Program-made: the position numbers and the translations under genes
The notes under the pieces: generated by a model
What the model saw: only the letters and a program-made list of their open reading frames with translations
Databases searched by the model: none
Told to the model about the DNA's origin: nothing
Sequence record: NC_061450.1
Direction: 5' to 3' (one strand)
Length of the DNA: 64,000 nucleotides
Part shown: one piece after another, positions 4,383 to 8,972 of the stretch
Numbering within the stretch: position 1 is the first letter of the stretch
How the letters are laid out: the number at the start of each line of letters is the position of its first letter

Positions 4383-6401
4383 TTAACCGAATACGATGTT
4401 TGTTACTGCGAGATATGCCAAGTCGTTTGAATCACCTCGGTCACCGCCACCAAACGCATACAGCCAAATCTCTTCACCAGCAGGAATGTTGGTGTTGAAA
4501 GTAATCGTCTGCATCTGTGTGTTGGAGAAGACACGCTGTGCTGCACCACGACCTGCGTAGCGCTCAAAGATGGACATATCATGCCAGCTACCGTTGTTAC
4601 CATCAAAGCGCCACTGGAAAGTAATCTGCTTGATTGGCTTGACGAAGCTGTTGTTGAACTTGAGCCAGCCTTGTGAGCCACCCCAGAAGTTCATGTAGCC
4701 GCCGTTGTCGCTGTGAGTAGTCTCCACACCACCACTAACAGTACGGCCACCGTCTTGAGTAAACGCATATGCGAACCAAGGCAGGGCGTCTGCGAATGGA
4801 GGATTGGTTGCTCCACCTTCGATAACAACACAACGGTAAGGCACGAGGAAGTCACTAACATCAATCTTTGGAGGCTGCACTGGACAGTAAACAAAATACT
4901 GCCAGTCACAACCAATTGGTGCTGTGACGCGTACCACGATGTTTTGACGCAGAGTATGCTCAGGGTACTTCCAGAACTCCAACGTACCACTAGCTCCAGC
5001 AGGCAAGATCTCAGTGTCCAGCAAGTTCATTGCCTGATCGAACACTTCAAACTTGGTTGCAAAGCTACCGCTGTTTACCTGAACCAGACCTGCACGAATA
5101 TCAGTCTGACCACCAAGAGCAAAGCAGTCTTCCGTGATTGGGTGACCCATACTATTAACTGAATAGCTTTCACATGGGTGACGATACTCACGCGCACCAC
5201 GCTCGGAAGGACAATACAGGTTATAGTAGTTGGATGCCAGACTAGCGGCCGAGCCGAAGTCTTTGCTGACAACACGAATCATCAAGTCATAGCAAGCTGA
5301 CGTAGTTGGGTCAAACAGGAAGTAGAGATAACCATCACCTGTTTGTGCATCAAGCGTGGTAGCAATACGATGGCCTGAGTGATAGACCTCGATAAAGTCG
5401 AATGTTTCCCACGAGGTATAGTCGAGGTACATCCATCCGGCTACCACGCCAATGTAATGATAATACTCAAAGGCATTTGCATCCTGTATACGCTCAGCAA
5501 TAGGATACACTGATGCATGACAAGGAGCAGGGAAGATTGGCGTGCCTATGTAGTCAGGATGAACAACGTCAGGGAAGTTGATAACGTCATAGCTAAGCTG
5601 GCTGTTCAGTTCCAAATTACCACGGTCAGACGTTACGACCAAGCGTGGAGGAAACACTTGAAGTGACCAATGTGCACCAGGTTCTGTACGCACACGAATC
5701 ATGATGCGCATGTCATCTGCATCTGGGTCAAATTGGAACTTGATACGACTACGACCACCAACACGCCCACACGTTGAGGCAACACGTACACCCATGTGGT
5801 ATACGTCAACGCTCATGCCTTTGGCAACATAGGATGCGAACATGAGTTCAACAAATCCTTCGATGCTCGGCATGGCGAACACTGTTTCTGTTATGGCTGC
5901 ACCGCGACCGTGAACACTGGCATAAGGCAAGTTTGGGTTAGCATAAGTACCAAGTCCTGTGCGGGAACCGGCACCCACTGGGTCATAGGACTCGAACGTC
6001 TTGATACCAGGACGATTGATACTACGACCAGTAGGCGCTGCACCGTTGTTGATAAGACCAAAGCCAACACGTCCAGCATCAGGCAAGTCATAGCCAGCAG
6101 GATATCCAGCAAGCTGATCGTACTTGGGACCACGCGAGCCATCACCTGTACCACTGCCTTTCGTTTGTGACGTAGGCCCACCGCCGCACTCTCCTGTTTC
6201 GAGATTGAGGCAAGGGTCATCATACGTTGGGTCAAACGAGTCATCGATTGCGTGCCAACGCTTGCCATACAAGTTGCGCACACTAAACTTTTCAGGCAGC
6301 AACGGCGCCCAATCACCTTGCTGTGTGCGCACGTACATCGGAGTATCAATGCAGTCAAGCCAGGCGTTGTTCGCTCTGTTTCTAACACGAAAACGTGCCA
6401 T
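4383..6401 (-). CDS. Virion fibre-associated protein with three internal beta-sandwich-like repeats
   Basis: GGAG RBS; repeated motif G.....Y.S......VDVYH.G.R.A.T.....G...(I/L).F.FDP....(I/L)M.RV. Confidence 0.7.
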   Translation of the reverse strand: MARFRVRNRANNAWLDCIDTPMYVRTQQGDWAPLLPEKFSVRNLYGKRWHAIDDSFDPTYDDPCLNLETGECGGGPTSQTKGSGTGDGSRGPKYDQLAGYPAGYDLPDAGRVGFGLINNGAAPTGRSINRPGIKTFESYDPVGAGSRTGLGTYANPNLPYASVHGRGAAITETVFAMPSIEGFVELMFASYVAKGMSVDVYHMGVRVASTCGRVGGRSRIKFQFDPDADDMRIMIRVRTEPGAHWSLQVFPPRLVVTSDRGNLELNSQLSYDVINFPDVVHPDYIGTPIFPAPCHASVYPIAERIQDANAFEYYHYIGVVAGWMYLDYTSWETFDFIEVYHSGHRIATTLDAQTGDGYLYFLFDPTTSACYDLMIRVVSKDFGSAASLASNYYNLYCPSERGAREYRHPCESYSVNSMGHPITEDCFALGGQTDIRAGLVQVNSGSFATKFEVFDQAMNLLDTEILPAGASGTLEFWKYPEHTLRQNIVVRVTAPIGCDWQYFVYCPVQPPKIDVSDFLVPYRCVVIEGGATNPPFADALPWFAYAFTQDGGRTVSGGVETTHSDNGGYMNFWGGSQGWLKFNNSFVKPIKQITFQWRFDGNNGSWHDMSIFERYAGRGAAQRVFSNTQMQTITFNTNIPAGEEIWLYAFGGGDRGDSNDLAYLAVTNIVFG

Positions 6402-6410
6402 AGCTACTCC

Positions 6411-6899
6411 TTAATCCCTGATCCACAGCGCCCCAGGAGAAACTTCGTTGTCGATGGCAGGGTCGGACGACTGAATGTAAACTTCCAACTTACCAGCAGC
6501 ACCTGTAGCACCAGTAGCACCCGTTTGACCTGTAGGACCTGGAGGCCCACGAAAGCCGATAACACCCTGCTTACCCTGAGCACCTTCGGTACCACGAGAC
6601 CCAGGACAGCCATCAGATCCCCGCTGCCCATCGCGACCAAACAGTCCGTTGAGACCATCACTACCATCACGTCCAGGAACACCAGCAGGACCATATCCGA
6701 TATCGTTAATAGTAGGCAGTCCGTTGATGACCAGCTTACCTATGTTGGGGATATTGATGCTGAGCTGTCCGTTGTTTCTATCAAACACACCATCAAGGAT
6801 ATCGCTAGACAGAGGACGAATTACTAGGCCCTGTTGCTCTGATACTACTTCACCATCAGAGTCAGAGCGCAGCATTCTTAAATCAACTTTAGTAACCAT
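6411..6899 (-). CDS. Collagen-like protein
   Basis: G-X-Y run GPAGVPGRDG...GATGAAG; GLPT N-domain; ends DP...GALWIRD. Confidence 0.85.
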   Translation of the reverse strand: MVTKVDLRMLRSDSDGEVVSEQQGLVIRPLSSDILDGVFDRNNGQLSINIPNIGKLVINGLPTINDIGYGPAGVPGRDGSDGLNGLFGRDGQRGSDGCPGSRGTEGAQGKQGVIGFRGPPGPTGQTGATGATGAAGKLEVYIQSSDPAIDNEVSPGALWIRD

Positions 6900-6909
6900 C
6901 TCTTACCTC

Positions 6910-7539
6910 TTATGGCCAAACTGAACCTTGATCGATATTCGGGTTAACCCATACAGTTCCTGCTGCTACGTTGCCTGGGTTAGTAGCGCTGACAATGATT
7001 GACAGACGACCACTTGGACCTGGAGCACCAGTTGGGCCTGTAGGACCCGTTGCACCTGTAGCGCCTGTAGGACCCGTACCGCCACGAGGGCCAGTAGGAC
7101 CCGTACCACCATCAGGGCCAGGAACGCCTGTGGGACCGCGTCCGCCATCTGGGCCAGGCAGACCAGGACGCCCATCTTTACCAGGACGTCCTTGTTGGCC
7201 TTCATTACCATCAGGACCCGTACAGCCAGGCTCACCCGGGGCACCGTCTCGTCCATCACGACCATCTTTACCATCAGCGCCTGTCTCACCACGACCACCC
7301 TGACGACCTACAGGGATATCACTTGCTGTGGGAAACCCTTTGACGTTGACAGTATCGCCGTTAGCAAACGTCAGGCTGAGCACGCCACTTGTTTCATCAT
7401 ACACACCTTCTGTGATTTCAGCGGTGGCAGTAGATTCAAGGCTAGACACAACCAGCTTGCTGTTCTGTGCTCGTAGGATACTTGAGGAGGCGGAGCTTCC
7501 GGTGCTGATTTGACTACTTTTTACTTTTACGAGACTCAT
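6910..7539 (-). CDS. Collagen-like protein
   Basis: Long G-X-Y run [10 protein letters not shown]...GAPGPSG; GFPT N-domain; ends [14 protein letters not shown]. Confidence 0.85.
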
Positions 7540-8972
7540 TATGTTTTCTCCGCCTGCGCAACGATGTCCGTATTATGAACCAAAATATCACCAACGTAAT
7601 AGCAATCATAAGGCTCAACATCAATGTCCACGGTTGAAACAGTTTCGTCATGGCGTTCACACTGAATGACACGCACAGGACCCTTGCGACCAACGACTAA
7701 ATCACCCTTGACGATTTCACGAGCGGGCACATACATCCAATTGTCTCGCTTGACCAGGACAGGGTGCTCATGCGTAAAGCGCTGTCCGTTGATCAGGAAG
7801 TAGTGGTCCTCTTGACCGTAGCGCAAGGCACGCACCGCTGCGTAATCATTACGGCCTGTGATAGCACGCGCAGACCACTCACGGAACTGTTTAGGCTGAT
7901 TGGTACGAGCAAGCAAGCTGTCACCAACTTGAATCTGCTCTACCTTCATAGTTCCCATCAGGGTTTCAACATCAGAGCCAAACACAATACAACCACGCTG
8001 CACACCTTGAGGGTTACGTGCAACGAAAGTGATTGAGCTTGAAGCAACTGCCGTAGGTCTTGATGTTTGGCCCAAGTCTGTTACAACGCAGGTAATTGTG
8101 CCGCGCAGAACTTTCTCGGAACCAGGTTCGACACGTCCATCAAACTTAATCTGAACGGTGTCTGTGGTGTCATCAGCAATGGTGATGTTATCCATCTTGC
8201 TGATTGACCACTTGTACTTGTAACCACCACGACCACCACGAACGTTAACAGGCAGGTAGGCAAGAGAGTTGAACAAGTCGCTGCCCTGTACTGATCGCTG
8301 ACCAACCATACTCACGTTAGAGCATGATGCAGACAGCACTTGAATAGTAGGCAGAGGAGGTGCAGGCGTACCAGCAGCAGTAGGATAAAGCCAAGCAAAC
8401 ACTCTGCTATCGCCGGGTGTTACTGTGCTTACTACAGCAGTGGTGATGGGCGCGGGACCCGTAGGACCTGTAGGACCGGCGATGCAGCTTGGACCGTCAT
8501 TACCACGAGGCCCGATAGGCCCCGTTGGTCCTGGTGGGCCTACTGGACCCGGATTGCCTGGGTCACCTTGATATCCATCGTAACCGGTCTGTCCCTGAAT
8601 ACCATCATCGCCGTCATTGCCGTCAGGCCCAGTGAGACCACGCTCACCAGGACGTCCAGCACATCCAACAGTACCTGTCTCACCATCACGACCGTCTCGA
8701 CCGTCTCGACCAGGAGCTCCTGGAGCACCACGTTTACCCGGCTTACCTGAACCAAACGCAGACAGCGTTGGCAGGCCTGCTACTTGCAACACATCACCAT
8801 TCTTCTTGATGAATGTTAGCAGGCCCATGTTGCTGTCAAAGCGTATCTTGCCAATTGATTTAAGGGTTTCGAGATCTGACGCAACGTACTCGACTACGCC
8901 ATTCTCAGACACAGCCTCTTTGCCGCTATCGTTCGGGTCAGTCTCAATGTCTGATAATCTCAGCGTTGTCAT
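7539..8972 (-). CDS. Collagen-like fibre protein with an Ig-like domain and a C-terminal Hint domain
   Basis: G-X-Y run; beta-sandwich [11 protein letters not shown]...ITCVVTD; Hint motifs CIVFG / FTHEHP / LVHN-T. Confidence 0.85.
7572..7991 (-). other. Hint (intein-like/BIL) autoprocessing domain, Cys328-Asn467, no endonuclease
   Basis: C1 (TGT at 7991-7989), block B TxxH (THEH), block F VDIDV..Y..YYVG, terminal His-Asn (7577-7572), then Thr. Confidence 0.85.

Follow-up and report, generated by a model that had tools for sequence, protein, structure and literature searches.

We analysed a 64,000-nucleotide stretch of DNA (the window) from Erwinia phage pEa_SNUABM_5 (NC_061450, 267 kb, genus Rivsvirus), a jumbo myovirus. 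The window is 100% identical to the record, and window coordinates equal record coordinates minus 62,000. Our subject is gp108 (7539..8972, (-) strand; 477 amino acids (aa) plus stop), annotated as 'putative tail fiber protein'. An original prediction, made from the letters alone, had proposed that gp108 is a collagen fibre protein ending in an intact-looking Hint domain with ten residues after it. On translation, every residue that it quoted proved exact: C328, THEH at 400-403, VDIDV at 448-452, H466-N467, and T468 with nine more. The evidence gathered here points to a Hint domain that may remove itself from the tip of the fibre.

From its N-terminus, gp108 begins with a domain of residues 1-75 (8748..8972; this and all gp108 coordinates below are on the (-) strand) that is common to the neighbouring proteins gp107 and gp106, as delimited by a three-protein alignment and matches to PHROG 8745/38766. 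Collagen triple-helix repeats follow at residues 76-174 (8451..8747; Pfam Collagen, 8.7e-15), with 29 + 3 G-X-Y triplets and Cys104 in the tenth. A post-collagen segment and an Ig-like beta-sandwich occupy residues 175-322 (8007..8450), a span defined by the AlphaFold2 model and by the end of a shorter orthologue, from Dickeya phage JA11, at the equivalent of residue 322. The collagen part of the predicted architecture stood; in place of the several Ig-like domains that were predicted, the full-length AlphaFold2 model has one all-beta Ig-like sandwich at about residues 214-320. This middle domain gave only weak Ig-type fold matches (intimin, E=0.019). Next comes a flexible linker, G323-V-Q-R-G327 (7992..8006), which ends in the Gly at position -1 and has low predicted local distance difference test (pLDDT) values at 322-326.

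The Hint domain, of the BIL type, spans C328-N467 (7572..7991), as delimited by Pfam, profile, AlphaFold2 and Foldseek analyses, and amounts to 140 aa or 15 kDa. It contains (i) the block A nucleophile Cys328 (Cys1; 7989..7991) in the context RG/CIVFG; (ii) block B, T400-H-E-H403 (TxxH; 7764..7775); (iii) block F, V448-D-I-D-V452 (7617..7631), supported by the orthologue alignment and by terminal relatives; and (iv) block G, the His-Asn pair (HN) H466-N467, together with the +1 residue T468 (7569..7577). A span of only 140 aa leaves no room for a homing endonuclease, as the original prediction had held. N467 is followed by a ten-residue tail (7542..7571) with a penultimate Lys (K476-T477); the conservation of this tail is above the protein average, and AlphaFold2 modelled it with low confidence. 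We found no second Hint domain within the 64-kb window, where that of gp108 is the only one.

Searches with the single gp108 sequence gave Pfam matches to Hint_2 (E=1e-5) and PT-HINT (E=8e-4), and the best match in the PDB by phmmer was 2lwy, a BIL domain from C. thermocellum (E=6e-4). A nine-sequence profile matched the 2lwy BIL domain at E=2.4e-12. Thus, of the Hint, BIL and PT-HINT comparisons that had been suggested as a check, the BIL profile match was strong, whereas both Pfam matches fell below their gathering scores; no intein model of NCBIfam matched gp108. The AlphaFold2 model of residues 321-477, built from a 62-sequence alignment whose rows were the window sequence and proteins returned by the searches only, had a mean pLDDT of 93.1. 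Foldseek placed 2lwy first against this model, with a template modelling (TM) score of 0.83 and a root-mean-square deviation of 1.9 Å. Tetrahymena BUBL BIL2 came second, followed by mini-inteins and then by Hedgehog (1at0, 6tyy; TM ~0.7), and the probability was 1.0 for BILs, inteins and Hedgehog alike. The profile match and the confident model make the Hint call unambiguous, and we considered and rejected a chance resemblance. These searches and models give solid grounds for a genuine Hint fold with an intact catalytic set, nearest to BIL domains.

Conservation among orthologues and a Hint-less relative

We aligned a close set of 21 proteins, each 476-480 aa long, which are 58-95% identical overall and 59-92% identical in the Hint region. 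Five stretches are invariant in these 21 orthologues: G327-C328, T400-H-E-H403-P, V448-D-I-D-V452, H466-N467-T468-D469 and A474-E475-K476. The same protein is present in about 50 cultured Erwinia, Dickeya and Yersinia jumbo phages, and a locus search with the gp108 protein alone returned close relatives only. Conservation of the catalytic residues in related phages, which the original prediction had proposed to examine, held for Cys1, TxxH and HN and broke down for T468. Deeper orthologues of the same architecture keep the former and have a changed +1 residue, which is Val in Yersinia phage fHe-Yen9-02, Ala in P0021 and P0023, Ser in P0022, and Met in P0024 and Alcaligenes phage Afa-NA1. Because the +1 residue varies in this way (T, V, A, S, M) among orthologues of the same architecture, the preserved activity cannot depend on a +1 nucleophile.

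A natural Hint-less orthologue was found in Dickeya phages. The phages JA11, JA13, JA29 and JA33 match the middle domain of gp108 at 50% identity, and no copy of the gp108-type Hint domain was detectable anywhere in the Dickeya JA phage genomes. The JA11 protein HOU32_gp096 (L010:3479-4453) is a syntenic gp108 orthologue of 324 aa, 51% identical. Its neighbours are as in pEa_SNUABM_5, with a 2.3-kb gene upstream, two collagen genes (633 and 495 nucleotides) and a 2.0-kb gp105 homologue, and the next gene begins 10 nucleotides past its stop. Over its whole length it can be aligned with residues 1-322 of gp108, and its C-terminus, ...ARNPK, falls five residues before the Gly327/Cys328 junction; the alignment contains no counterpart of either the Hint domain or the ten-residue tail. 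In a neighbour-joining tree of the N-terminal parts, JA11 is nested among Hint-bearing orthologues, and its Hint-less state is therefore a loss. Since the JA11 fibre is intact without the Hint domain and tail, the cassette that these two form is dispensable. We conclude from these comparisons that the working fibre is the N-terminal ~322-327 residues, and that the Hint domain and tail are a single add-on unit and not an intein splitting an older C-terminus.

The same comparisons bear on whether gp108 carries an ordinary selfish mini-intein near the C-terminus of the fibre, which would splice via Cys328, Asn467 and Thr468 to restore a native end. Phages are rich in inteins, and gp108 and the 20 closest orthologues retrieved (58-95% identity) have the full class 1 residue set, including Thr at +1. 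However, the Hint-less JA11 orthologue lacks a counterpart of the C-extein, other orthologues have V, A, S or M at +1, no endonuclease is present, and about 50 phage genomes have the domain as a fixed feature. The cassette also ends many unrelated proteins (see below) instead of interrupting a conserved site, and its closest relatives are BILs, not inteins. Such comparisons largely refute a selfish mini-intein, which we rate as very improbable. As a category, the canonical class 1 intein was rejected too: H466-N467-T468 is present here, but extein continuity fails in JA11 and the +1 residue is not conserved. The original prediction had argued that ordinary splicing is not the point of the domain, and we agree, given a +1 residue that is unconserved in orthologues and non-nucleophilic in most of 93 terminal relatives, and a Hint-less JA11 protein that is a complete fibre.

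Related Hint domains at the ends of other phage proteins

When residues 321-477 were compared exhaustively by phmmer with 1.84 billion cluster representatives, 415 relatives of the gp108 Hint domain were returned at E<=1e-3 (counted as cluster representatives). The statistics that follow are for the Hint domains in the best 150 of these 415 proteins. Ninety-three of the domains lie at the extreme C-terminus, with 1-15 residues past the Asn. All 93 terminal relatives have the terminal Asn, and 92 have the penultimate His; the Thr and His of TxxH are present in 89/93 and 86/93, and Cys1 in 59 of the 60 terminal relatives that were aligned. At +1 the residue is mostly non-nucleophilic (A 21, V 11, K 9, S 7 and L 7 among the 93). 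The terminal Hint domains have a median length of 150 aa, versus 132 aa for internal ones among the matches.

The sequences on either side of the domain also have a signature. The residue at -1 is Gly in 39/60 relatives, and the eight residues before Cys1 contain 3.35 Gly on average, often as GGGGGG; we take the gp108 linker G323-G327 to be the counterpart of this poly-Gly linker in distant relatives. Lys is found in 89/93 tails, and its position is set by the distance from the C-terminus and not from the Asn (penultimate in 40%, last in 19%). It lies within the last four residues in 73% of tails, compared with 28% of control open reading frames (ORFs), a crude control drawn from the window and related loci. 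As read from these alignments, the putative cassette is a Gly-ended linker, a BIL-type Hint domain of ~140-150 aa, His-Asn, and a short Lys-bearing tail.

The proteins that end in this cassette differ widely in their N-terminal parts. Collagen repeats are present in 16 of the 67 terminal relatives scanned; the others have Ig, Calx-beta, PASTA, BACON, GP38 or phage-tail domains, and fn3 occurs too. The best matches among predicted viral structures were proteins of phage NCTB and uncultured Caudovirales proteins named for PASTA, fn3 or Hint. Gene order of the gp108 type is kept in Alcaligenes phage Afa-NA1 and also on a 311-kb metagenomic contig, where two collagen proteins, of 210 and 163 aa, come after a 723-aa collagen/Calx-beta/Hint protein. 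Two proteins of phage NCTB end in the cassette, the gp108 orthologue and a 1375-aa homologue of gp105 (L009:2356-6483). This homologue is 35% identical to gp105 over 539 aa, has twice its length, and ends GGGGGGC...Hint...HN-APVDQKH. Because the cassette is found on varied N-terminal parts and on the NCTB gp105 homologue, we regard it as an optional and portable unit among fibre-module proteins.

Several other arrangements were seen among the matches. Directly after a Hint-bearing tail protein, phage NCTB has a free-standing 153-aa Hint ORF, BN7874_135 (L009:744-1205), with 7 residues before the Cys, 3 after the HN, and the block B His replaced (TGYP). Near-free-standing Hint domains with N-exteins of 15-17 aa occur among the metagenomic matches (P0057, P0089). 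The metagenomic proteins P0025, P0028 and P0091 have two or three tandem Hint domains, then a hydrophobic transmembrane-like helix and a short basic tail, an architecture that looks distinct from the terminal cassette.

We considered whether the Hint domain might simply stay on the fibre as a distal knob, for example a binding domain, with catalytic-looking residues that serve folding or are recent relics. Among orthologues the Hint domain is about as conserved as the Ig-like domain (Hint versus Ig-like identity of 71% vs 88% in Yoloswag, 61-64% vs ~60% in the Alexandra group and 51% vs 54% in the Yersinia phage), distal fibre domains are often dispensable or swapped, and the orthologues are annotated 'virion structural protein', all of which would suit a retained tip. 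That label, however, is silent on which part of the protein was detected. In addition, Cys1, TxxH and HN are the most conserved columns of the family and are kept in relatives down to ~30% identity, which points to retained chemistry and not to a binding surface, and the flexible Gly linker always precedes the domain, which always occupies the very end, whatever the N-terminal part. On balance we think a retained structural tip unlikely.

Possible self-removal of the Hint domain and its known counterparts

The known system beside which the gp108 Hint domain is best placed, as judged from sequence and fold, is the type A BIL domain. Type A BIL domains have the His-Asn pair and no +1 nucleophile; an N-terminal thioester is formed, the C-terminal bond is cut by Asn cyclisation, and the products come mostly from cleavage, with some splicing through attack of the freed amine on the thioester (PMC4031507). 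Like the C. thermocellum domain (PDB 2lwy), the gp108 domain has Cys1, TxxH, a C-terminal His-Asn, a mini size and no endonuclease. Its family likewise resides in variable surface or secreted proteins, not in conserved enzymes, and the +1 residue is not a nucleophile family-wide; cleavage would be expected to dominate, and splicing would be possible, as in type A BILs (PMC4031507). Unlike type A BILs, the gp108-type domain is found at the extreme C-terminus, with only 1-15 residues past the Asn, nearly always including a Lys near the end; it has a Gly or poly-Gly linker before it, is longer (median 150 aa), and is carried on phage fibres. The Erwinia clade differs further in having Thr, a nucleophile, at +1.

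Our preferred reading, held with moderate confidence, is that the gp108 Hint domain has been domesticated as a portable autoprocessing cassette of the type A BIL kind, which detaches itself from the tip of the fibre. We propose the following mechanism because gp108 has all the residues needed and because BILs are closest to it in both sequence and fold; the steps are modelled on intein and type A BIL chemistry. Cys328 would attack the Gly327 carbonyl in an N-S acyl shift assisted by T400/H403, giving a Gly327 thioester, and Asn467 would cyclise with the help of H466, releasing the decapeptide tail. The thioester could then have two outcomes: (i) hydrolysis, to give a mature fibre of residues 1-327; or (ii) transfer to the tail, to give residues 1-327 plus 10 residues. 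Transfer to the tail could proceed through the Thr468 side chain in this clade, or through the freed alpha-amine as in type A BILs. Under either outcome the 15-kDa Hint domain would leave, and the N-terminal part would be the working fibre. While the fibre is being assembled, the cassette would most likely cap its tip covalently and transiently or help to keep it soluble; a temporary covalent cap at the distal end is the simplest interpretation of its purpose.

Five points weigh against self-removal as we propose it. First, we infer cleavage of gp108 solely from the conserved chemistry. Second, the loss in the JA phages speaks to dispensability, and a non-essential tip domain that is retained would fit it too. 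Third, self-removal should need Cys1 alone, which would leave the invariant HN and the Lys-anchored tail (89/93) unexplained. Fourth, there may be a selected outcome that involves the tail or the thioester beyond plain removal. Fifth, the conservation of the tail in the Erwinia clade is, as it appears from the codons, partly at the DNA level and owed to the ribosome-binding site of gp107, which lies within the tail. A Shine-Dalgarno-like GGAG of gp107 (7548..7551, (-) strand) falls inside the codons for A474-E475, the gp108 stop and gp107 start overlap (TAATG; the stretch concerned is 7539-7553), and the tail codons GCG-GAG-AAA are identical in DNA in four phages whose upstream tail codons differ synonymously. 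We rejected the idea that the tail Lys is a mere by-product of this ribosome-binding site; it holds in the Erwinia clade and fails in L002, L003 and L009, where the site lies past the stop codon.

Because plain removal leaves the invariant HN and the Lys tail unexplained, handover of the thioester to an outside nucleophile has to be weighed. The original prediction had raised such a cross-link; here the Gly327 thioester would be captured by an outside amine or hydroxyl, on a virion protein or the host surface, leaving the end of the fibre covalently bound to it. The precedents are the transfer of cargo to cholesterol by Hedgehog and the analogous transfer proposed for the ciliate BUBL BILs that flank ubiquitin-like modules. 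A -1 Gly and poly-Gly run (39/60) would provide an unhindered, flexible thioester, like the Hedgehog G/C junction or the GG end of ubiquitin; BUBL BIL2 is the second-best structural match; and surface fibres carry the cassette at their distal end. However, no acceptor was identifiable, the Hint-less JA11 fibre works without any such ligation, and free-standing or near-free-standing Hint ORFs with exteins of only 7-17 aa exist. An external nucleophile would not need Asn cyclisation either. Overall, we regard an activated-thioester ligase as distinctly unlikely. We judge as no more probable the corresponding picture of the whole cassette, in which the poly-Gly linker, Hint domain, HN and Lys tail would form a phage-borne, enzyme-free conjugation device whose thioester is captured by a specific amine or hydroxyl, with the conserved Asn and the Lys-bearing tail timing or steering the transfer.

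The two systems that inspire this comparison resemble gp108 in part. Hedgehog/Hog proteins, like gp108, have a cargo followed by a C-terminal Hint domain with a Gly/Cys junction (G327/C328 in gp108); the thioester forms at the last residue of the cargo, the Hint domain is released, and the folds match at TM ~0.7. However, Hedgehog lacks the terminal His-Asn and has a sterol-recognition extension for cholesterol, whereas gp108 has an invariant HN and, in place of any adduct-recognition region, only a 10-aa tail, and in both sequence and fold the gp108 domain is closer to BILs. Tetrahymena BUBL BIL2 (PDB 6y75/6tmm), the second-best match by profile as well as by structure, similarly stands directly after a Gly-ending module that it is proposed to process; it differs from gp108 in being eukaryotic, in flanking ubiquitin-like domains, in being internal and not terminal, and in its identity of just 16%. 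PT-HINT (PF07591) is, like the gp108 domain, an HN-type Hint used for release and not for splicing, and 31/67 terminal relatives match it at E<1e-3. It precedes a released C-terminal toxin domain, whereas gp108 has only 10 residues past Asn467. PT-HINT toxin release was therefore rejected for gp108: the match scores 20.1 bits, under the Pfam gathering cut-off of 27.7, and no toxin domain follows.

A functional analogy, and an analogy only, can be drawn with the Peptidase S74 chaperone and, more loosely, the procollagen C-propeptide, in that a C-terminal fibre domain removes itself after assembly (PMC7824862). The S74 domain, a Ser-Lys dyad enzyme, is unrelated to the gp108 Hint domain in fold and chemistry, and Pfam and NCBIfam scans found no S74 domain in gp108. 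The analogy raises the question of a strict folding or trimerisation chaperone, as offered in the original prediction, in which the Hint domain would nucleate or register the collagen helix from its C-terminal side before being removed. In favour of this, collagen helices depend on a domain that sets their register, 16/67 terminal relatives have collagen, and a self-cleaving C-terminal chaperone is established in phage fibres in the form of S74 (PMC7824862). However, the JA11 orthologue has the collagen and Ig parts without a Hint domain, the Hint domain is absent from the paralogues gp107 and gp106, whose collagen runs are of similar length, and most cassette-bearing relatives have no collagen. 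The solved Hint and BIL domains among the matched PDB entries are monomeric autoprocessing units, and there is no sign that the Hint domain aids folding. We know of no Hint domain that acts as a trimeriser, and we give a strict chaperone a slim chance.

The claim that such a fibre-assembly route is not normally described for phages has to be tempered. GenBank/RefSeq notes for phages Y3 and NCTB already read 'putative phage tail protein, contains intein domain', and cleaving type A BILs are established (PMC4031507). In a full-text literature search, no work on the function of a Hint or intein domain at a phage fibre end came to light, and the publications on PaBG, AD1, CBB and MIJ3 and the jumbo-phage overview do not discuss a terminal Hint domain. 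Three aspects appear to be new: (i) a terminal sub-family that is set apart by its characteristic linker and tail; (ii) the spread of terminal Hint domains over many phage fibre architectures; and (iii) a natural Hint-less orthologue that marks the cassette as a removable add-on.

To our knowledge, self-removing C-terminal domains of phage fibres have so far been of the S74 serine-lysine type. If self-removal of the gp108 cassette is correct, Hint thioester chemistry would be a second, unrelated solution and a new maturation route for receptor-binding proteins. The annotation of fibre genes would also change, with mature gp108 at ~33-34 kDa and not 50 kDa. If the thioester is instead used for conjugation, phage assembly or adsorption would include a Hedgehog- or ubiquitin-like covalent attachment step. 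The cassette is widespread (415 cluster representatives), occurs on many kinds of fibre, and is apparently unstudied; the intein field gains from it many natural examples of terminal BIL-type domains whose C-exteins are minimal, with which the coupling of N-cleavage to Asn cyclisation in the absence of a +1 nucleophile can be studied.

The fibre module around gp108

gp108 belongs to a baseplate/fibre module in which genes like gp25, gp6 and gp5.4 and those for an Ig-like virion protein and a DUF4183 protein lie upstream of it. The Y3/AD1/Yoloswag lineage, which includes pEa_SNUABM_5, has been called 'hairy Myoviridae' by morphology (PMC6143709), and gp108 is a collagen-like fibre that probably belongs to the tail 'hairs' or to the baseplate fibres of these 'hairy' jumbo myoviruses. 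After gp108 come two short genes for collagen-like 'tail fiber' proteins, identified as paralogues by Pfam and alignment: gp107 (6910..7539, (-) strand), of 209 aa with 34 triplets, and gp106 (6411..6899, (-) strand), of 162 aa with 23 triplets. Neither has a Hint domain.

Throughout this three-gene stretch (6411-8972, (-) strand), gp108, gp107 and gp106 have in common an N-terminal domain of ~70 aa and a post-collagen motif. Each also has a Cys exactly 28 residues into its collagen run, in the X position of the tenth triplet, although the triplet counts differ (32 in gp108, 34 in gp107 and 23 in gp106). In gp108 this is Cys104, which is invariant in the 21 orthologues and replaced by Asn in the Hint-less JA11 protein. 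The same-register Cys suggests a common register or a disulfide knot. The three proteins could possibly form a heterotrimer, though their helix lengths differ while the Cys register is the same.

PV550095.1 (Alcaligenes phage Afa-NA1, 78 kb) and PV359490.1 (Salmonella phage Sen-NF, 108 kb) gave identical match statistics for both the Hint and the Ig-like domains, and their fibre modules are syntenic with jumbo-phage modules although the records are smaller than 110 kb. The two may contain a common segment, or they may be partial or mixed assemblies.

Beyond gp106 lies gp105 (4383-6401, (-) strand), which has no Hint domain and no Pfam match and whose C-terminus reads ...NIVFG. In a BLASTP comparison of gp105 with its Afa-NA1 homologue, a second, off-diagonal alignment paired gp105 residues 308-479 with residues 167-315 of the homologue (E=0.02). 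This alignment contains the similar motifs …VDVYHMGVRVASTCGRV… and …IEVYHSGHRIATTLDAQTG…, and it hints at an internal duplication of a ~150-aa module in gp105.

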